Source: Gekko japonicus (Eukaryota). Taken from it: a stretch of DNA of 64,000 nt. The position numbers and the translations under genes were made by a program. Of this stretch, positions 6,701 to 63,639 are shown in pieces; the first letter of the stretch is position 1; each line of letters starts with the position of its first letter. The notes beneath the pieces were generated by a model. The model searched no databases. It was not told where the DNA came from and was given only the letters and a program-made list of their open reading frames with translations. The stretch lies in assembly GCF_001447785.1 (NCBI RefSeq), contig NW_015174273.1:2081204-2145203 (forward strand), given 5' to 3'.

Positions 6701-7389
6701 TGATCTGCAGCTCCCTTATCATCACATATTTCATAAAGGAATTACATTCCTGTTCCATGACAAGCTCTTGCCTGGTTTTAGTTCTAAATACTGCATTAGA
6801 AGAGACTCTGGGTGAACTTCTTACAACAACTTTTACCAGCACAGATTAGACTAGGGTAATTAAGCAAAGAAAGATAAGTGTTTAGAATTACTGCCAAATT
6901 ACTGCACCACTGCATTAATTTAACAGGGGGGGGAGATGGGGGGGTTGTGGTGATTTGTCAGGAATACAAAACACTCCAAGCTGGGAGACAGAAATCAATT
7001 ACAGGCTGGGCAAAGGGATGAGAAGCAAAAAAGGGAAACAATGCAGCTTTGCAGAAAATTAGTTAATAAAATGACCTGCTGAATTGTTTGTGTTTAATTG
7101 CATGATAAACATCTAGTAACCATCTTATTATTGTTATAATACTAAGTAACTTGCACACACCCTCCAAGTTTCTTTTTCTGAGCTAGGATAAGGGGACAGG
7201 AAGGTCAGTCAGCCTGAAGTTTCTGTCTAACAGGCAGAGCTGAAACATCTCTCTTCAATGATCAGCAAAAATTATTACTGTCCTCATCGCAGTGCTACTC
7301 ACGTTACTCTTAACATGGATTATGGTAGCATAACTGGCAATAAAGACTGAACTCTTGTACGGGATGGAGGGATACGGACTTACACTTAC

Positions 7390-8023
7390 CAAGTTTTGGT
7401 GAAGCTGTTTGGATATTAGTTTCTGTTTCTTCTGCCAGAGAAGCTGTTGTGGCTCTTTTCAGCTCCGGGTCCAGGCTGAGTGGAGGTAAGGAGGGTGCGA
7501 AGGAGGGTAAGAAATTAGAACCTAAAACACTGTTATGTGGCGATGACTGAGGAGCAGCCTCGGAGGAAACTAGGGACCCTGTCACCTCAACTTCAACTTC
7601 GCTGGTAGGCACGGGGAAGTACGAGGTATGCACCACAGACGGCACCCAGGCAGACAATGCAGTCGGATCCGCGGGAGTGATGGGATCTTGTCCGATCCTG
7701 TCGGGGCCGAGGTGGGTAGGAGAGTCATACTCGAAAATCTTGTCCACAAAGACCCACTTGAGGCCGGCGATGCAGAGGCACAGACTGATCAGGCAAGCCA
7801 AAATGGGGACAATGCAGATTTTCTCAGAGTTCAGACAGCCCTTCAGTTGTTCCGCTTCCAGGCAGATACAGCAAGTAGCAGCCAGGCCTGCTATCCCTTG
7901 CACCCTTGTCTCCTCTCTTTGAGTCTCTGGCACATCCTCCTCAGCAGGGAGCCCCTCGAGGGATGCAGTGGGGCTCAGCTGCATTGAGGGGCTGGGAAAA
8001 GCCTCCAGAGTGGCTTCAGACAT
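7390..8023 (-). CDS. NRG1: NRG1 type III (CRD/SMDF) first coding exon
   Basis: Translation MSEATLEAFPSPS...CCICLEAEQLKGCLNSEKICIVPILACLISLCLCIAGLKWVFVDKIFEYDSPTHL...TETNIQTASPKL is the cysteine-rich N-terminal domain with internal TM segment of type III neuregulin-1. The exon ends at a strong phase-1 donor TTG|gtaagt (intron begins 7389). The ORF-track extension to 7310 is intronic read-through. Confidence 0.97.
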
Positions 8024-19811: not shown

Positions 19812-22329
19812 TGTTGTTGTTGTTGTTGTTCAGTCGCACAGTCGAGTCCGACTCTTCGCGATCCCATGGACCATCTCCCGCCAGGACTTCCTGTCTTCCG
19901 CCGTCTTCTGAAGTTGGCTCAATTTCATGTTCGTTGCATCGATGACACTGTCTAACCATCTCATCCTTTGCCGTCCCCGTCTTCTTTGACCTTCAATCTT
20001 TCCCAGCATCAGGGTCTTCTCCAGTGAGTGCTCCCTTCTCATTTGGTGGCCAAAGTATTTGAGCTTCAGTTTCATTATCTGGCCTTCCAGGGAACAGTCA
20101 GGGTTGATTTCTTTTAGGATTGACTGATTTGATCTTTTTGCAGTCCAAGGGACTCTCAAGAGTCTTCTCCAGCACCATAGTTCAAAAGAATCTATTCTTC
20201 GGCGCTCAGCCTTCCTTATAGTCCAACTCTCGCAGCCATACATGACTACTGTGAATACCATTGCTTTGACCATGCGGACTTTTGTTTATCATGCTGTTTA
20301 GGTTCGCCATCGCTTTCCTCCCAAGGAGCAGGCGTCTTTTAATTTCATGGCTGCAGTCACAGTCTGCGGTGATCTGGGATCCCAGGAACGTGAAGTCTGT
20401 CACTACTTCCACGACTTCCCCTTCTATTTGCCAAGGAGTGATGGGGCCGGATGCCATGATCTTAGTTTTTTTGATGTTGAGCTTCAAGCCCACTTTTGCA
20501 CTCTCCTCTTTTACTCTGAGCAAGAGGCTCTTAAGGTCCTCTTCACTTTCTGCCATTGCCATAGTTTGTTGTGATCCACACAGTCAAAGGCTTTAGCATA
20601 GTCAATGAAGCAGAAGTAGATATTTTTCTGGTACTCTCTTGCTTTCTCCATAATCCAGCGAATGTTGGCAATATGATCTCTCGTTCCTCTACCTCTTCGA
20701 AACCCAGCTTGTACTTCTGGTAGTTCTCTATCCACGTACTGTTGAAGCCTAGCTTGTAGGATCTTGAGCATGACCTTGCTAGCGTGTGATATGAGTGCAA
20801 TTGTGCGATAGTTTGAACATTCCTTGGCGTTGCCCTTCTTTGGGATTGGAATGTATACTGATCTTTTCCAATCCTGTGGCCACTGTTGCGTTTTCCAAAT
20901 TTGCTGGCAAATGGAGTGCAGCACTTTAACAGCATCATCTTCTAAGACTTTGAATAGCTCAGCTGGAATACCATCACCTCCACTAGCTTTGTTGTTAGCA
21001 ATGCTTTCTAAGGCCCATTTAACTTCACATTCCAGGATGTCTGGCTCAAGGTCAGTGATTATACCGTCGTGTTTGTCAAGGACATTGAGGTCTTTCTTGT
21101 ATAGTTCTTCTGTGTATTCTTGCCATCTTTTCCTAATCTCTTCTGCTTCTGTTAGGTCCCTACCGTTTTTGTCCTTTATCATGGCCAGCTTTGCATGGAA
21201 CGCTCCCTTGATTTCTCCAATTTTCTTGAAGAGATCTCTAGTCCTTCCCATTCTATTGTTTTCTTCTATTACTTTGCACTGTTCATTCAGGAAGGCCTCC
21301 TTATCTCTCCTTGCTGTTCTCTGGAAATCTGCGTTCAGTTGGGTAAATCTTTCCTTTTCGCCTTTGCCTTTCGCTTTCCTTCTTTCCTCTGCTATTTGTA
21401 AAGCCTCATCAGAAAGCCACTTTGCTTTCTTACATTTCTTTTTCTTTGGGATGGTGGTGATTGCTGCCTCCTGTACGATGTCACGAACCTCTGTCCATAG
21501 TTCTTCAGGCACTCTATCTATCAAATCCAGACCCTTGAATCTATTCTTCACCTCTACTGTATATTCATCAGGGATGCGATCTAGGTCAAACCTGAATGGC
21601 CTCGTGGTTTTCCCGATTTTCTTCAGTTTAAGTCTGAATTTTGCAATGAGTAGCTCATGATCTGAACCACAGTCAGCTCCAGGTCTTGTTTTTACTGACT
21701 AGATAGAGCTTCTCCATCTTTGACTGCAAATTATATAGTCAATCTGATTTCGGTGTTGCCCATCTGGTGATGTCCATGTGTAGAGTCGCCTCCTAGGTTG
21801 TTGGAAAAGGGTGTTCGCTATGACCAGTGTGTTCTCTTGACAAAACTCTGTTAACCTTTGCCCTGCTTCATTTTGCTTTCCAAACTTGTCTGTTATTCCG
21901 GTTACCTTTTGACTTCCTACTTTAGCATTCCAGTCCCCTATGATGATGAGGACATCATTTTTTGGTGTTAGTTCTAGGAGGTGTTGTAGGTCTTCATAGA
22001 ACCGGTCCACTTCAGCTTCTTCTGCATCAGTGGTTGGGGCATAGACTTGGATTACTGTGATGTTGAATGGTTTGCCTTGGAATCGGACAGAAATCATTCT
22101 GTCATTTTTGAGATTGTATCCCAGTACTGACTTTTGCACTCTCTTGTTGACTATAAAGGCCACACCATTTTTTCTACGAGATTCCTGGCCACAGTAGTAG
22201 ATATAATGGTCTTCTGAGTTAAATTCGCCCATTCCTGTCCACTTTAGTTCACTGATTCCTAGGATATCGATGTTCAGTCTTGCCATCTCATTTTTGACCA
22301 CGTCAAGCTTACCTTGATTCATAGATCTT
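19812..22329 (-). mobile_element. BovB (RTE) LINE, 5'-truncated, APE plus RT, with internal deletions and a stop
   Basis: ORFs 21699-22673, 20511-21551, 20206-20562 and 19830-20273 are consecutive BovB segments (endonuclease GDWNAKVG/NQIDYI; RT). It has a (CAA)n tail and an 11-bp TSD acagtaacttt (19801-19811 / 22330-22340). A deletion near 20560 removes the YADD region. Confidence 0.97.
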
Positions 22330-24920
22330 ACAGTAACTTTAGCTCCCCAAATAAGCAGCCACATCTCTGAAACTGAAAAACTGATTCTGCTAGCCAGCTC
22401 TGTTACACCTCTTGTGTTCGTGGTAGGCATATATTTCCCTTCGAGTGAAATCCAAAACTGGCCTTTCAGCCTCTTCCCAGACAGGTAGATGTGAAATGAG
22501 GGGTTTTTTTGGATAAAAGGCATCTTAATGGCTCCTACGTGACGAGGCCCAGGGTAGCTTTCATAGTAGGGCAGCATGTTCCTATTAGTCAATGGGACAT
22601 TGCTGACGCTTGTAAGAAAAAGGTATTCAGCTGGAAGCTGGAAAAAGAGGTAAAATGTGGAGGGCTGGACCACTCCATATGGGAAACGATTCTCTCCTAA
22701 GTTGCGTTTTAAATTTATGTTTTATACTTACAATACTGCAAACAATTCCAATGTAGCTGTGATTAAACATCAATTTGAGAGCTGAGAGGAAAGCTCAACT
22801 GCCTCTTTTCTCCCCCATTCACTACAATAAGCTTCAAATTACGCTGCGCAATGTATCAGCAAAACAGAAATAGAAACACCACCAGGTTATTTTAGGGCAT
22901 CATGCTGCTGGACCAGAGTGCCCTCCAGAAGTTCAATGGCAAGGAGAAAAAAAACCTTTAATGAACACAGGGGAGGAAAAAAAATCATCCTTTAACTAAT
23001 CCCGTTTAACAAGCACCAATATTACACCCCAGTTACAGGGGTAGACACAGGCTAATTAAAAACATGCACCTAGGGTCTAATCAGGGGTAATAATTACTTG
23101 CAGCTGTTTCCACTACAGTCCCTTCTCCACCCCCCGCCCCCAATGCCCCAACCAGCATCTATCAGTACAGGAAGCCCAATACATTATTTATGTGGAGGCT
23201 GGGGTTAGAAAGCCTACAGATGCTGCTTTCCGCTGAAACGGTAAGTTATAGTGATTGGCAAAAGGAAGCTTTTGCTGTTGCATTAGGTGATGAGACAGAC
23301 CCAAAGCCTTGCCAAATAGAATAGCTAAGTAATAACAAATAATATTAGAAAAATGCAATTTTGTGGGGCTAACAGGCAGGGCTCCAATAGAGCCCAGTAG
23401 GCAATCTCAAATTATTCCTGTAGCAATTAACTGATTGTAATAGGCTTGCACATTTCCTTTGATCTATTAATGTGATTAAGTGCAAGGGTATTTATTCAGC
23501 GATTTCCAGAAGGCACGTGGTAATCTGGTGCCTGTATGAGAATGAGTAAAAGCAAGAATCTCTATATAAATATCTCTTACTTTTTTCAAAAAAAGGACTA
23601 CCTATGGTAGAAAGGTCAGCCATGGTCATTCCCTGGCATGCCAACAAAAGACCTTTCACTGCAGGTACATGTTTATCATGCTAGCATCAACATATGCCCT
23701 TCTCGTATTTCAGACTTTTTTTCAGTAAAGGAAGCCCACCCCCTATGTGCATAGAGAATTTTCCTCTGATCACACAGTACCCTCAAGGAAGGGGTGCCAC
23801 ATCAACGAAATCCTGAAGACATAGTTGGGGAACTCTTGCAGGGCATGCAAGAAACTTTCTAACGCCAATGCATTAACCTTAATTAATTGAAAATGATTCA
23901 GTACTCTTAGCGTTAAAAAAAAGCCCTGTTACATTGCAGTAATTTACAAAGAAGGTTGAGGAATTATACAAAGTCATTTCATCTCCTAAAGTAGTTTTTA
24001 AGAAAGCAAGCAGGCTTAGTTCTCAGGTTGTTCTTTTATCGTGTACTTTTTATACAGGCACTTATTAGCGGTGTACCATAATGACTGGTGGCATTTCCAC
24101 AGACTTAATAAGTAGCTCTTCTTCCTGTTGCCCATGTGAATCTGAGACTATAGCAGGAAGATGTGCAGCCTTCCACTCGAATGATGGCTCCATCTGTCCC
24201 ATGTGGCCATTGATTACCAGCAACCTCTGTAGCTAGAGTCTGACAGCTGACATATACTTTTCCTACAAAAGCCCTTTTACGAGAGAGAGAGAGCGCCTGA
24301 CTGATACAATTGTTTGCACTAATCCTATTAGGGAAAAGGCTGTTTGCTAACAAAGGAAATATATTCTATGGAACAAGAAAGCCAAGAATAACACCTTAAT
24401 TTATTTTATTATATATGTAAATTCACTCCTTTCCACCCTGCCAAGAATTCACACTTAACAATTCCAGAGGGGTAGCAAAGTGGGTACCTTATAGATTTAT
24501 TGTGGCATAACTGTTTGTGGACTAAAGCTGTTTCATCAAATTAAAGACTGTTCTAAACTGATAGATTAATTGATATATACATATTGTTTTAACACAAGTG
24601 CAGATATACATAACTATACATTCAAATATGGGTGCTGAAAAAAAAGACTGGAAACAGTGGGGCCAAGGAGCCATAAAATTCAAGAAATATGGTCAGTCTG
24701 TGAAAAAAACAAATGTATACAAAATAAGAATAGATGGGTGATATTAAACTAAAACGTTGATTGTATTTGTCCTAGTATTTTAAATGATCAGAAAATCCTT
24801 CTAATCTCATTGCTGTATAGGATGACAACCCATTTCATTATTAAATCGATGCCACATTCAAAGAACACGTGTAAAGTAAATATATCTTCAGCTATACCAA
24901 CCCTAGTTTTTATATGAAGA

Positions 24921-26699: not shown

Positions 26700-27000
26700 A
26701 CATGTCCTTTAAGCTTATTCTATTTCCCACTATTTCCCATTTCATTCATTACAATCAAGTTGTAGCTTTGCAAGGAAGTTCAAGGAAATTAGTCACCCAA
26801 GCCCCAATTTTACCAGCTTACCTATTCCTCACCAGTCTCTGACAAATCTGACAAACTGAAGAACAAAGCTTTCAGAAGCTTCTTTGTCTCCTTCTCGAAT
26901 TTTTCCCCCTTATAGCAGAAAACCAGGCAAATAGTTAAATGAGAATACAAGCTTCGTTCCATCAAGTTTCAGATGACAGCACTGTATGCCCTTTTTTACT

Positions 27001-28502
27001 AGTTAAATGGGCCTTAGAAAGCATTGCTAACAACAAAGCTAGTGGAGGTGATGGTATTCCAGCTGAGCTATTCAAAGTCTTAGAAGATGATGCTGTTAAA
27101 GTGCTGCACTCCATTTGCCAGCAAATTTGGAAAACGCAACAGTGGCCACAGGATTGGAAAAGATCAGTATACATTCCAATCCCAAAGAAGGGCAACGCCA
27201 AGGAATGTTCAAACTATCGCACAATTGCACTCATATCACACGCTAGCAAGGTCATGCTCAAGATCCTACAAGCTAGGCTTCAACAGTACGTGGATAGAGA
27301 ACTACCAGAAGTACAAGCTGGGTTTCGAAGAGGTAGAGGAACTAGAGATCAAATTGCCAACATTCGCTGGATTATGGAGAAAGCAAGAGAGTACCAGAAA
27401 AATATCTACTTCTGCTTCATTGACTATGCTAAAGCTTTTGACTGTGTGGATCACAACAAACTATGGCAGGTCCTTAAAGAGATGGGAGTACCAGACCACC
27501 TCACATGTCTCTTGAGAAACCTGTATAAGGGCCAAGAAGCGACAGTTAGAACCGGATATGGAACAACTGATTGGTTCAGCATAGGAAAAGGAGTACGACA
27601 AGGATGTATATTGTCGCCTTGCTTATTTAATATATATGCAGAGTACATCATGCGAAATGCTGGCCTGGATGAATCACAAGCGGGAATTAAGATTGCTGGG
27701 GAAAAGATCAACAACCTCAGATATGCAGATGATACCACTCTAATGGCTGAAAGTGAAAAGGATCTAAAGAGCCTCTTGCTCAGAGTAAAAGAGGAGAGCG
27801 CAAAAGTGGGCTTGAAGCTCAACATCAAAAAAACTAAGATCATGGCATCCGGCCCCATCACTCCTTGGCAAATAGAAGGGGAAGTCGTGGAAGTAGTGAC
27901 AGACTTCACGTTCCTGGGATCCCAGATCACTGCAGACTGTGACTGCAGCCATGAAATTAAAAGACGCCTGCTCCTTGGGAGGAAAGCGATGGCGAACCTA
28001 AACAGCATGATAAAAAGTAGAGACATCACCCTGCCAACAAAAGTCCGCATGGTCAAAGCAATGGTATTCCCAGTAGTCATGTATGGCTGTGAGAGTTGGA
28101 CTATAAGGAAGGCCGAGCGCCGAAGAATAGATTCTTTTGAACTATGGTGCTGGAGAAGACTCTTGAGAGTCCCTTGGACTGCAAGAAGAACAAATCAGTC
28201 AATCCTCAAAGAAATCAACCCTGACTGTTCCCTGGAAGGCCAGATAATGAAACTGAAGCTCAAATACTTTGGCCACCAAATGAGAAGGGAGCACTCACTG
28301 GAAAAGACCCTGATGCTGGGAAAGATTGAAGGTCAAAGAAGACGGGGACGGCAAAGGATGAGATGGTTAGACAGTGTCAGCGATGCAACGAACATGAAAT
28401 TGAGCCAACTTCGGAGGACGGCGGAAGACAGGAGAGCCTGGCGGGAGATTGTCCATGGGGTCGCGAAGAGTCGGACTCGACTGTGCGACTGAACAACAAC
28501 AA
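27001..28502 (+). mobile_element. BovB (RTE) LINE, 5'-truncated, uninterrupted RT ORF
   Basis: The 517-aa ORF 26939-28492 contains the full RT (NYRTIAL, QAGFR, FIDYAKAFD, GVRQGCILSP, LRYADD) through to the natural stop and (CAA)n tail. Confidence 0.97.
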
Positions 28503-58932: not shown

Positions 58933-61537
58933 CTTTCATCTTGTTCCATCACAAAGATCTGCACTGATCTTTGCTTTTCAAAATATAATCCTTGCCAAAG
59001 TGCTCTACTGGAAGTAAGATCTGAGAAAGGATTTCCATGTGACTGACAAGTACAGACACTGATAAACATGCTGCTGTCAGGCAAAGATCCATAAACGAAT
59101 GCTCCGCAGGTATCCACTATAGTGAACAAATCAAGGTTCAGATAATTCAGCCATGTTTGGAAAGGGCTCTGAAAAATGTGGGAACAGGCCAGAGGAACGT
59201 TCCCTTGCGATCACTATTTGTGTCTAACTCCTTGCAAGAAGAGTGGAGGTTGATATACTTGTGTGTTCAACCACTAGCTGGCATAGTGAGGCTATCAGTA
59301 TGACTGACACATTCATACATGAGAAGAAAACACTACTAAGAGCTGGTGTAATATAGATATCTCACATAGCCAGTTACTGCATCCATTAGTTGGACTTACC
59401 AACAGTGTAAACACAGTTTATGTAAAATTGACACTGAGTGAATAAACATCTTCTGTTCATTGGCTCACCTGGACAAGAGAGGTCACGGGAACTTGAACAG
59501 TTCCATGCAATTGTGACCGTGAAATAGAGGAGAGCAGCAGTCGAATGGCAGAGGAAAGAGAGGGAGAAGGAACCATGGAATTGAGGCACAAACCAGACGT
59601 ATTTCTGAGTGTAACGACAGCAACAGGGGACTACACTGATTAGACAGATGGGGTGAAAAAAGAAAAACCCTGAGCTAAATGGCACAGAAGGGCCTTCAGG
59701 AGCAGGGGAGACTGGTAACTCACCACATAGAGTCTTCTACTTTGTGACACCCAGGCAATACCACTGCACTGAGCAAACTCAGATGTGGAAACTAAGCTGT
59801 CTAGATATTACTTCAGGAAGGAAACAAGAACTCCAAAGTGACTGGGGTATCAACGACATGAGGAAAAATGTTTGTCTTTATAAAACTGTTGTCTTGAATC
59901 CTTGTGTTTGTTCGGATTTCAGATTGTTATACTACAAAAAGACTGAGGCTTATACTTGTCACAATATTTATCTCCTGCCTCCAAGAAGCTCTGAACTGTA
60001 TATATGTGGATAATCCATCTAATACCCACAAGCTGGGTTGGGCTGAGAGCAACTCACTTGCTGAAAGTCATCCAGTAAGCAGAGAACAGAACCTGTGCGT
60101 CCCTGGGTCAAAGTCCAACTGTACCAATATGGCCATGGTTCTGGTACTGTATGCCTCCCCACAACCAAATGCAAAATATTTTGAGGTAGGTATAAGAGAT
60201 AAAAGTAGGTACGGACTAGGTATAAGATGTAAGACTAAAAGTTAGTTAAGAGCAGCAAATGCTGTCCTCCATGGCTTGACTCTTAAAATTCTCCTGAAAG
60301 GATGAGTGACAAGAATAAGTCTACTGATTTATTTCAGGATCAAGTGTTTTTCTTTTTAAAAAAATTACAGAGAAAGCACATTTTTAATAAAAAGTTAAAA
60401 TGTCAACTTTGGGAACACACAGAGTTGAACCAGTAGTATAAAATTCTTAAAGGGTCTCTTAAAAATAACGATCTAAAAAAACCCTTGAGGATGAAAATTT
60501 TTAACACAATTTCTTTCACAGGTGGTATAAGTAATCAAAACTGTTGGTGACCAAGAATAAATAGCTAATAATTAATCACTTTGGTTGAAAAGAGTTTCTC
60601 CAAATACAGTAATTAGGCAGAGCCATTCATAGCAGATGAAAGAAAGAACAGTAAGCTAAAAACTGACATTAAGAGATATCATAATCACTTTCCAGTGGCA
60701 CTTTTGGAATTATCATTCAGAATACTCATCTGGTAGCAAGAATTCAAACGAAGCCAATCACAATGTGGAAAGTGCTGCAGCACCTACACACTACACTTCC
60801 TCAGCAATTTCATTATTAATGCCCCCCGCCAGTTGAAGCAGCAGTGACATATGAAGAAGGGAATTCTGCCACAAGGGATTGGGTGGGGGAGAAGAAATTG
60901 GGATTTACCTAGTACTGTGGCCTATTAAGGCTGCAGCTTTTAGAAAGATTCCATTTTTTAGATTCCATTTTTTTAACTTGCTTTGTGTGTATGTCTGTGT
61001 TTTGAGGAAGAAATATGTTTTTCTGCAACAAGGCATAAGCTACTCACTTTGATACTGCAGAGTAAGCACACGGCCCAAAGCAAAGCTGATGTTCAGAGTA
61101 AGTGTTCTAGAAATTATGAGGCAGGAAAAAGCTCTAAGAGCACTCATGCCTAATCACCAGTTCTTTCACACTCTCACCAAAATAATTCTAAAAATATTAA
61201 ACATGGCATTCAAATGGTTTAAAGCATTAGAACACATTCTATACTTCCCTCCAGTGCTGTGAAAAACCATCCATGACTGTCACAGAAGCAGTATTTACAT
61301 TTCTGAAAGCAATTTCAGCTTTTCTAGGGTACATCTTGAAATTTACAGAAACCACCAAGTAGGGCTTGATCAGAAACTGTGGTGTTGACATAACAAACTA
61401 GAAGTGATAGCTTGACAATTACTACCTCCTTACCCTTGAGAAGCTCTTCATTTGTTCACAGCCTTGGAGAGATTTTGTAAACCATGAAGCTGTGAATGAC
61501 CTACTGTGTAAATCTCAGATGGCACCTCTCCCTGGTC

Positions 61538-61811
61538 TAGTCTTGCCAAGTCCCCCCGGGGGGTGGATCGGGCCCCGGGGGGAACTCCACCCCAACGTGC
61601 ACGTCACCAGGAAGGGACGCGACTATGCCGGGCACATTGGGGGCCGGGCCACGGTCATCCGAGGGAAAATTCTATGGTTTTCCCTTGGATGGTCGTGGCC
61701 CCGCCCCCAGCATGCCACATCCACACTTCCTGGTGATGTGGATGCAGCGCGCGCTCCAGGATCGACCTGGGAGTCCCCCGCTTCAGGACGAGGTACAACT
61801 TGGCAACCCTA
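61538..61811. mobile_element. hAT-type MITE (TAGGGTTGCCA family), CpG-rich
   Basis: tagtcttgccaagt / acttggcaacccta termini with a perfect 8-bp TSD ccctggtc (61530-61537 / 61812-61819). Confidence 0.85.
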
Positions 61812-61900
61812 CCCTGGTCTCTGCAGTGTACACAGTGTGTATGATCTTCCAGTGCTAAAAGTAGCAGCTTTTTACTGCTCATCAAAACAGCAAATGGTTC

Positions 61901-63160
61901 GGCTTCCGGTCTGGCTCCCGCGAAAGGCAGACGCATCCTCGGGTCGCTCCCGAGGGCGCCTTGCCCGCCCGCGGTGGAGGAGGGAATCCGCGCAAGCGGA
62001 GACCCGAACGAGCCCCTCAGATGAGAGGAGCTCGGATCCGGGGCGCTTTAGGGCGTTCCAGGGGGGAGTCTCTCTTTCGGTCGAGAGATCGGAGATTGAG
62101 ACTCTCGCCATGCCCTGCCCCTTTGGACCTTGCTGCGTGAGCGACCCCGTTCTACGGGGTTTAGCGGAACCACCGGGCGTCACCGAGTGATGAAGCGGGG
62201 GAAAAAATGGAAAATAAAAGACTGGCGTAACTGTGAGTTGTCAAAATACAGAGAAAATGAACTAAGAACGTTTCCCCCCCCCTTCAGCGGAAAATGAGGA
62301 GGTTAATCCTCTATAAGCGAGAAAGAAAAAAAAGAAAAGAGGGGGGGAATGGACTGAGCGAATAGTGATGTTTTCCTTTGATGTACTTGAAAATAAGCAA
62401 GAGGTTTTGTTTCCCTGGAGCGCATTTTAAAAACTTTACTAAAAATAAAAAAACAAGATGTCGGAGCTGGGTAAAGACAAGCGGGGGAGAAGGGAGGGAC
62501 TTCCGTCTGGGCGTTTGTGTCAACGTGAGTGCCGGCTGTTTAATATTTGGACTGTGTATGGCTATGAATCCAACGGGGATTGTGAAGGAAAAGAAAAGCT
62601 TGAATTGTGACAGCGGAAAGTGCCTCATGAGCGCTTATAAAAGTCAACGAGGAGAATCCAGCGAAGGGGACTGGGAGCGGATAAAAGCGAAATTGAAATT
62701 AATACCATTCTCAAAGCTGGAGATCTCCGGGCATGGCATGAAAGGAAGACAGCTTACAGCACAGGAACTGAAAGAGTTAACAGCGACCCGAAGGAGGAGG
62801 GGAAGAAGCCGGAGGCAAGAGAAAAACAGAGGAAGCCTCTCCCGTCACTGAGAGGGGAAAAGTAACCAGCGCGTTAAAGAAGCGGTTCTGAATGTGCCTT
62901 GAAGAGACTTTTTAACAGAAATTCAAAGGAACATTACTAATAAATTAACATAGAAAGTAACTGGAATGGAAAAAAGATGTTTGACAACACGCAGAAGAAG
63001 CCTTTGTTGATTGGACATTACTAACAGTTTAATCTAACAGTCAATACATCACTCAGCTTTCTCTTTCTCCCACTATATACCCTCCTTATCTTTCTTTTTA
63101 AGCGAAACTCCTCCCTTTTTTAGGGGAGTCAATAAAATCTTTATAAAAAAAAAAAAAAAA
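61901..63160 (+). mobile_element. Complete 1.26-kb non-autonomous retroposed element (L1-type TPRT hallmarks, no RT)
   Basis: 17-bp TSD aaaacagcaaatggttc (61884-61900 / 63157-63173), AATAAA at 63131, A16 tail at 63145-63160, 5' end GGCTTCCGGT, and a CpG-dense first ~300 bp. Confidence 0.88.
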
Positions 63161-63639
63161 CAGCAAATGGTTCCACTAGCAAAGAGAGCTTCCTGGGCAT
63201 GCAGAAAAATGCCACACTCAAATACAAGCCCCTGAACTCCAATTGTATTGGGAAATTTACCTATAGTCCTTCTCTTGGGGAGGGGGAGAGGAAGCTGTTT
63301 CCTCTTCCTCAACAACAGCACATTGCACAAATTACCACGCAACATCACAAAGCTATGGAATGAGGTTTCCGGGGGCTTCAAGCACTGATTTTCAATTTTC
63401 CATTTTGAAGAGAATTTTCATATAGCAATGTTTTTAGCTTATGCGGGGCACACATGAGTAAGCTGCTTCCCTATCCCTCAATTTATGTATACCTCTTGGC
63501 TTTCCTCTTGGCTCAAGGTGGCCAAAGGAAATGCCTTTTAAGACTGTCAAACCTAGAACTTGGACTTCGGGAGAGCAACTTGTGCCATCAGGGCCTGATA
63601 ACAGGTGTTAAATAAACTCTAAACAGTTAAACAAACTTT

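Follow-up and report, generated by a model that had tools for sequence, protein, structure and literature searches.

A probable young copy of a high-copy, L1-mobilised non-coding retroposon family in the genome of Gekko japonicus

We analysed a 64,000-nt stretch of the Gekko japonicus genome (NCBI RefSeq assembly GCF_001447785.1, contig NW_015174273.1, positions 2,081,204 to 2,145,203 of the forward strand; hereafter the window, with positions counted from its first base), and in particular a 1.26-kb insert near its right end. A first-pass annotation of the bare sequence had singled out this insert as a candidate non-autonomous element transcribed by RNA polymerase II (Pol II). With a probability of roughly 0.75, the insert represents a young and full-length member of a high-copy, non-coding and polyadenylated retroposon family mobilised by L1. 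To our knowledge, it is only in primates (SVA, LAVA) that L1-dependent non-coding retroposons transcribed by Pol II have been studied in depth; an expressed, still-inserting squamate family would offer an independent case of the capture of L1 proteins in trans by an RNA lacking open reading frames (ORFs). The family may already sit, unnamed, in repeat libraries.

Insertion hallmarks and empty site

A perfect 17-bp direct repeat, AAAACAGCAAATGGTTC, flanks the insert (61884-61900 and 63157-63173) and abuts the A-tail exactly; the chance expectation for a perfect 17-mer pair within 1.7 kb is about 1e-4. Between the repeats lie 1,256 bp (61901-63156), made up of 1,244 nt and the A-tail. The insert starts with GGCTTCCGGTCTGG, its 5′ terminus being GGCTTCCGGT and its first bases (61901-61911) GGCTTCCGGTC, and its 3′ end reads ...GTCAATAAAATCTTTAT before the A-run. 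As annotated earlier, AATAAA is present at 63131-63136, with an 8-nt gap to the A-run at 63145-63160. This run had been described as a pure A16 tail: the 16 A are indeed there, but the last four are equally part of the duplication, so that the tail measures 12-16 A and the duplication, found at both ends as first noticed, 13-17 bp. The target, initially read as TC/AAAA and likened to the L1 preference, is CATC/AAAACAG in the sequence, that is TTTT/GA on the strand that is nicked and then serves as primer for reverse transcription, one base off the L1 endonuclease consensus TTTT/AA. A duplication within the 7-20 bp or so expected, poly(A) signal and tail, a nick site near TTTT/AA and an empty site with the duplicated target in one copy are all found together, as in L1-type insertion by target-primed reverse transcription.

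The reads came from two RNA-seq runs (X22 and X23), a small run (X1) and a deep DNA run (X5), all mapped on 61500-63600, with an identity of at least 90% for the X5 contigs. The empty site was observed in X5: contig record 9 (212 nt, depth 41.6) joins 61786-61897, through one letter, to 63172-63270 and carries a single copy of the 17-mer. Its depth is near that of the adjacent single-copy contigs (38-47). The poly(A) region was masked in the X5 mapping, and a filled allele in the same individual is not readable from these data. In an index of sequencing runs, 31-mers of the element were present in 20 runs from eight studies, all of one organism, at 36-64% each and in none at about 100%. Since no run held all 31-mers and the flank contigs of X5 show a divergence of about 1-3% from the window, X5 perhaps represents another population or a close relative rather than the source individual. 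The insertion is thus polymorphic or lineage-specific. It is very recent: the perfect duplication, the pure tail and the undecayed CpGs agree with the empty site. The recent date that had been proposed is in this way borne out.

Several positions of the copy, e.g. 62215, 62616, 62838, 63042 and 63116, are unlike all or nearly all reads and contigs and are private to this copy or its immediate source. Two of the differences touch poly(A) signals. The copy reads AATAAA at 62213-62218, whereas all RNA reads, the single X1 contig and nearly all of the X5 depth have G at 62215 (AAGAAA). Similarly, it reads AATAAA at 62939-62944, whereas the majority of RNA reads and of contig depth have C at 62941 (AACAAA). 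Productive members of the family may avoid the premature poly(A) signals present in the 61901-63156 copy.

A family of probably thousands of copies

The element is unique within the window. In X5, by contrast with the single-copy right flank (summed contig depth about 40-125), the summed contig depth reaches 5.5e4-1.2e6 over 61926-63132, and 13,637 X5 contigs match the 2.1-kb stretch, a count that includes an even more abundant repeat in the left flank. This contrast of three to four orders of magnitude, with the number of distinct contigs, indicates a repeat family at roughly thousands of copy-equivalents. The insert thus probably belongs to a multi-copy, polyadenylated family without reverse transcriptase (RT) that counts roughly thousands of copies. 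A single-copy outcome, named beforehand as the refutation of a family, is excluded by the X5 depth and contig variants, which equally dispose of the suggested alternative of a one-off retrocopy of a non-coding RNA. One exact-pattern scan of metagenome contigs gave no further copies.

Many two-state positions at intermediate frequency were observed in both DNA and RNA, among them 61959 C/T, 62022 T/A and 62943 A/T, a 7-nt AATTGAA following 62648 and the loss of 1 nt at 62666. These shared variants point to subfamilies. The insert is covered from end to end by X1 contigs, in eight pieces with 0-8 differences each and, in six of these, no more than 3. The boundary of one X1 contig falls exactly on 61901, which indicates that the family, or its transcript, starts at the same base as this copy; within the insert, DNA depth is high from the first 25 nt onwards. 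We also considered a chimera private to the 61901-63156 copy and rejected it, as the X1 contigs 62026-62122 and 62124-62257 cross the change from GC-rich head to A-rich body almost without differences. This arrangement is therefore common to other copies.

Could the insert be an artefact of assembly, or part of some longer autonomous element that was truncated or rearranged? With the insert as the one full copy inspected, some room is left for such a reading. We nevertheless judge it highly improbable, since the duplication brackets exactly 61901-63156, a contig of another run ends at 61901 with high depth from there on, and the empty-site contig shows a clean insertion. Loose ends were examined as possible junctions to a longer element and rejected: the best supported (62517, 62955, 63010 and 62912) align to the window with few changes, as diverged variants of it.

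The depth is uneven along the element. Over the first ~170 nt it is 2-10 times that of the rest, and it rises again in the last 70 nt. As a speculation, short copies produced by premature polyadenylation, or by internal priming in the A-rich 62196-62260, may also contribute to the 5′ excess.

Transcripts from many loci

RNA reads of X22 and X23 cover 61901-63132 while the depth on the right flank is zero, so the reads come from other copies and not from read-through at the 61901-63156 locus. In X22, 346 reads were identical to the copy at 99% or more, 1,020 at 95-99% and 1,528 at 90-95%; this spread from 90 to 100% indicates that many loci contribute RNA. Over the body of the element (62494-63061), the ratio of RNA to DNA depth was roughly 10-50 times that of the repeat next to it in the left flank. 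Transcription that is not merely passive is suggested by this difference, to which GC content and the identity cut-off could contribute.

Such a transcribed, polyadenylated sequence might also be an ordinary processed pseudogene, that is one abundant host mRNA or long non-coding RNA (lncRNA) with a start of the terminal oligopyrimidine or ETS type, retro-copied repeatedly, with no copy acting as a source. The insertion hallmarks would be identical, the CpG-island-like first 300 nt do resemble a first exon, and RNA is present. We consider this improbable in view of the thousands of copy-equivalents by depth and the 13,637 distinct contigs on the 2.1-kb stretch. The heterogeneity of the RNA reads, with variants common to RNA and DNA, further indicates that many diverged loci are transcribed, and neither a conserved ORF nor a known RNA family was found in the element.

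Several points nonetheless weigh against reading the insert as a copy of a high-copy L1-mobilised family. Depth summed over contigs does not amount to a copy number. The family is read from depth and variants and not from a second end-to-end copy with its own target-site duplication and tail. The 5′-heavy depth is the opposite of the usual 5′-truncation profile of L1-mobilised families and needs a separate explanation. Finally, mates in both orientations, at about 1.3:1, make the RNA libraries look unstranded, and they give neither the strand nor the start of the transcript.

Coding capacity and polymerase class

The ten longest stop-free segments of the element on both strands (53 aa or more) gave no Pfam match at E<=1, and hence no endonuclease (EN) or RT. 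The only sizeable ORF, at 62378-62851, had been called unrecognisable, and so it proved: a word search with its 157-aa product found no relatives, as did one with a 94-aa minus-strand ORF of the abundant head, and a full HMMER search against 1.84 billion representatives returned bacterial proteins only, at E about 1e-5 to 4e-4. Three of the four bacterial matches carry SBBP beta-propeller repeats, which inflate the score, and we rejected these proteins as relatives, reading the matches as chance. The plus strand is poor in T (21.5% over the element, which has 47% GC, and 14-18% over much of the ORF), so that an open frame of 157 codons is unremarkable.

Indels were observed within this frame. 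The copy is without the 7 nt (AATTGAA after 62648) of most RNA reads, and about half of the reads are without the nucleotide of the copy at 62666. The net difference of 6 nt at 62648-62667 leaves the 157-codon frame open, which may be a coincidence given an ORF without relatives.

No tRNA was found in the element by ARAGORN, and no Rfam family inside the insert at E<=1. The absence of tRNA/5S boxes, EN and RT noted at first pass thus agrees with empty results from ARAGORN, Rfam and Pfam. A short interspersed element (SINE) transcribed by RNA polymerase III (Pol III) was rejected on these grounds and also because the element is 1.25 kb long, contains six T-runs of at least four nucleotides and ends in AATAAA with a tail. 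With Pol III ruled out by these features, Pol II is left as the plausible polymerase of an element that shows no Pol III-type head, in keeping with the Pol II-driven transcription proposed initially.

A possible origin from L1

Anolis clade-1 L1 families all begin GACTTCCGGTG-N8-ATGGCG and zebrafish L1s begin GGACTTCCGGTT (Boissinot & Sookdeo 2016, PMC5381506), a publication that bears out the earlier statement on G(A/G)CTTCCGG-type L1 5′ ends in non-mammalian vertebrates. In the gecko element, the ETS-like 5′ terminus GGCTTCCGGT was verified at the start of the insert, with its ETS-type core. Bases 3-10, CTTCCGGT, match the published start of Anolis and zebrafish L1s, the two lineages compared, and CTTCCGGT is found nowhere else in the window on either strand.

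The likeness extends to the untranslated regions (UTRs). Lizard clade-1 L1 5′UTRs have a mean length of 1.3 kb, 45% GC, about 56 CpG and two CpG islands 300-400 bp apart, their first ~120 bp being best conserved across families, and the 3′UTRs of lizard L1s have tracts rich in C or T and finish with AATAAA and poly(A) (PMC5381506). The element compares with this description through its 1,244 nt, 47% GC, 62 CpG, two CpG-rich stretches and C/T tract before AATAAA. L1-type ends shared with other families would moreover give an excess of depth over the first ~170 nt and the last 70 nt.

On these resemblances, we put at about even odds that the family arose from an ORF-less L1 which kept a long 5′UTR-like head and a short 3′UTR-like tail. 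A more specific proposal is that geckos carry an active L1 parasite made of L1 UTRs only (promoter-bearing 5′UTR and 3′ end), with thousands of copies and polymorphic insertions; we put it forward tentatively, as possible though below even chances. If true, a UTR-only parasite would be the squamate counterpart of the hominid SVA, competing for L1 proteins via L1's own promoter. The head, if it is an L1 5′UTR, would also mark an active L1 lineage in the Gekko japonicus genome.

An L1 ancestry meets objections of its own. The link would consist of an 8-nt terminal motif and a resemblance to a verbal description, not of an alignment. The element lacks the ATGGCG that in Anolis L1 stands 8 nt beyond the motif, and no ORF1 or ORF2 remnant was detectable by Pfam in its stop-free segments of 53 aa or more. 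Ordinary genes with CpG islands also often start with ETS-type CTTCCGG motifs, and Anolis and geckos are distantly related. The LINEs (long interspersed elements) of the window are an RTE-BovB and a second one that matched no solved L1 protein; neither is similar to the element.

Under another origin, an L1-mobilised Pol II non-coding family is not itself derived from L1: its masters would stem from a host transcript or a composite of host sequences, in an SVA-like manner, and CTTCCGG would be a promoter element of the common ETS type. In favour of such an origin, the element showed similarity in sequence to no LINE, it has no ORF remnants and the ATGGCG of the Anolis L1 start is missing. An L1-like 3′ end is not required either by L1 enzymes that recognise only poly(A), as the cases of Alu, SVA and processed pseudogenes illustrate. 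We nevertheless regard a non-L1 origin as rather unlikely, because the conserved L1 terminal motif lies exactly at the first bases of the element and because the length, GC, CpG number, two-island layout and C/T tract fit published lizard L1 UTRs (PMC5381506). The 2-10 times higher DNA depth in the first ~170 nt, expected if this part is shared with other L1-type families, argues in the same direction.

Propagation and known retroposons

Taking the insert as a copy of an L1-mobilised family, its propagation can be pictured as follows. Transcription of a master copy by Pol II would begin at the first base, the promoter probably being the CpG-island-like head with its ETS-type CTTCCGG start. As the anatomy of the 3′ end shows, the RNA is cleaved and polyadenylated after the terminal AATAAA. 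The ORF2 protein of L1, acting in trans, would then nick TTTT/GA and prime reverse transcription on the poly(A) tail, and the insertion that it drives would leave a target-site duplication of 13-17 bp, as the hallmarks of this copy suggest.

The closest parallels are the hominoid SVA and LAVA, which are also non-coding, 1-3 kb long and CpG-rich, with presumed Pol II transcripts carrying AATAAA and poly(A), L1-type duplications, L1 mobilisation in trans, thousands of copies and polymorphic insertions. They differ in belonging to another host lineage and show no sequence relation; the head of the gecko element looks L1-like, not composite. An SVA-type composite was rejected, as the element is without hexamer repeat, Alu-like region, VNTR (tandem repeats that vary in number) and SINE-R modules and the Tandem Repeats Finder (TRF) showed no tandem array, listing just a 19-nt AAAGA run and the tail.

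Human SpIREs and other spliced L1 retrocopies, and Bov-A from BovB, are similar in that an ORF-less LINE transcript keeps its ends and is copied in trans. However, the spliced human copies are sporadic by-products that form no amplifying family, and in the gecko element a deletion junction and homology to an L1 would be putative. HAL1, the mammalian half-L1 that holds ORF1 only, is likewise RT-less, L1-dependent and poly(A)-tailed, with an L1-like head. The gecko element differs in being without ORF1, with no match to Transposase_22 or any other Pfam family in any frame. A HAL1-type element was accordingly rejected: L1 ORF1, intact or decayed, was not detected (Pfam, E<=1), and the 157-aa ORF has no relatives. 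Processed pseudogenes share the insertion mechanism and hallmarks; unlike them, the gecko family is high-copy, with subfamily variants and heterogeneous transcripts, and no parent gene was identified. Polymorphic insertions of the family would provide presence/absence markers for gecko populations.

Internal layout

The positions of the features are collected in Table 1. The insert holds 62 CpG, with an observed/expected ratio of 0.90 vs 0.28 for the window and 0.16-0.30 for the flanks, in line with the dense unmutated CpGs reported previously. Two CpG-rich stretches (61901-62200 and 62501-62700) are separated by a 300-bp trough. The first of them, the head, is a putative internal Pol II promoter, a role suggested by its composition and start. 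The part with the lowest DNA depth, 62565-62848, may be specific to the retroposon family.

Table 1. Coordinates of the retroposon copy and its parts in the window
Feature	Position	Strand	Remarks
Left target-site duplication (AAAACAGCAAATGGTTC)	61884..61900	.	opposite-strand nick site TTTT/GA
Whole retroposon copy	61901..63156	+	1,244 nt and A-tail; apparently full-length for its family
5′ terminus GGCTTCCGGTC with ETS-type core	61901..61911	+	fits the start G(G)ACTTCCGGT(G/T) conserved in Anolis clade-1 and zebrafish L1 (PMC5381506)
CpG-island-like head	61901..62200	+	GC 0.62-0.73; 33 CpG; observed/expected about 1.0; highest DNA depth of the family
A-rich, CpG-poor spacer	62201..62500	+	holds AATAAA at 62213
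Longest ORF	62378..62851	+	157 codons, TTG/ATG start; without relatives, best read as non-coding
Second, weaker CpG-enriched stretch	62501..62900	+	19 CpG; observed/expected 1.1-1.3 in 62501-62700
C/T-rich tract directly upstream of poly(A) signal	63057..63121	+	compare lizard L1 3′UTRs (PMC5381506)
Poly(A) signal AATAAA	63131..63136	+	8 nt before A-run
Poly(A) tail	63145..63156	+	12 A; up to 16 with the first 4 A of the duplication
Right target-site duplication	63157..63173	.	perfect 17-mer match

A YY1 site at 62452, proposed on the basis of CAAGATGTCGG, was rejected: the ATGG core is broken and the site lies about 550 nt from the 5′ end, far from the start. A simpler reading is a Kozak-like ATG opening a 50-codon ORF. 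The interpretation given in the first-pass annotation is thus supported in part, namely for a recent, multi-copy and RT-less family with L1-type hallmarks and plausible transcription by Pol II, whereas the YY1 site is unconvincing and the joining of an L1 5′UTR to an L1 3′ end by deletion or splicing is putative.

Splice-like signals were also observed within the element: donor-like ACT|GTGAGT and AAC|GTGAGT (62229-62240 and 62524-62532) and a polypyrimidine-CAG acceptor (62270-62288). No splice joint in the element was found among the joints listed for the mapped RNA reads. In run X22, 14 RNA molecules start at 62224.

Genomic context

The window contains an intact 237-codon ORF on the minus strand at 7310-8023, which we take to be the NRG1 type III cysteine-rich-domain (CRD) exon from its CLNSEKICIVPILACL...KWVFVDKIFEYDSPTHL stretch. 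Relative to this exon, the insert lies in antisense orientation and some 54 kb upstream. It had been placed antisense in an NRG1 intron: the orientation stands, but the position would fall within an intron only in isoforms whose start is further upstream. Insertions of the family would scatter a putative CpG-rich promoter module through genes, here antisense upstream of the NRG1 type III exon.

The left flank holds, 72 bp upstream of the insertion, the abundant repeat already mentioned, which is ~273 bp long (61539-61811). It is flanked by a 9-bp direct repeat, CCCTGGTCT, bears inverted repeats at its termini (TAGTCTTGCCAAGT / ACTTGGCAACCCTA) and contains a long palindrome with 39-nt arms that are 82% complementary. 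From these features it looks like a DNA transposon of the MITE (miniature inverted-repeat transposable element) type. Its summed X5 DNA depth of 1-3 million is above that of the retroposon, RNA reads are present too, and Rfam gave one sub-threshold MIR164-like hairpin and no other match. In the right flank, 63241-63406 is represented by two X5 contigs (depths 38.7 and 37.7), one of which has a 6-nt AGATGA insertion after 63286 and five differences; the X5 individual appears heterozygous there.

The second LINE of the window (19830-22673, minus strand) carries RT domains as well as the Pfam endonuclease domains Exo_endo_phos and Exo_endo_phos_2. Against solved structures, that of human L1 included, the EN part of this LINE found no match. 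The RTE-BovB ORF (26939-28492, plus strand) encodes a reverse transcriptase of 517 aa, 80-85% identical to proteins of Podarcis, Varanus and Bos. Public databases list near-identical RTE-BovB proteins as coming from Staphylococcus aureus, Mycoplasmopsis arginini and Babesia ovata, encoded on contigs of 2-3 kb; these are almost certainly due to contamination of those assemblies with host DNA.

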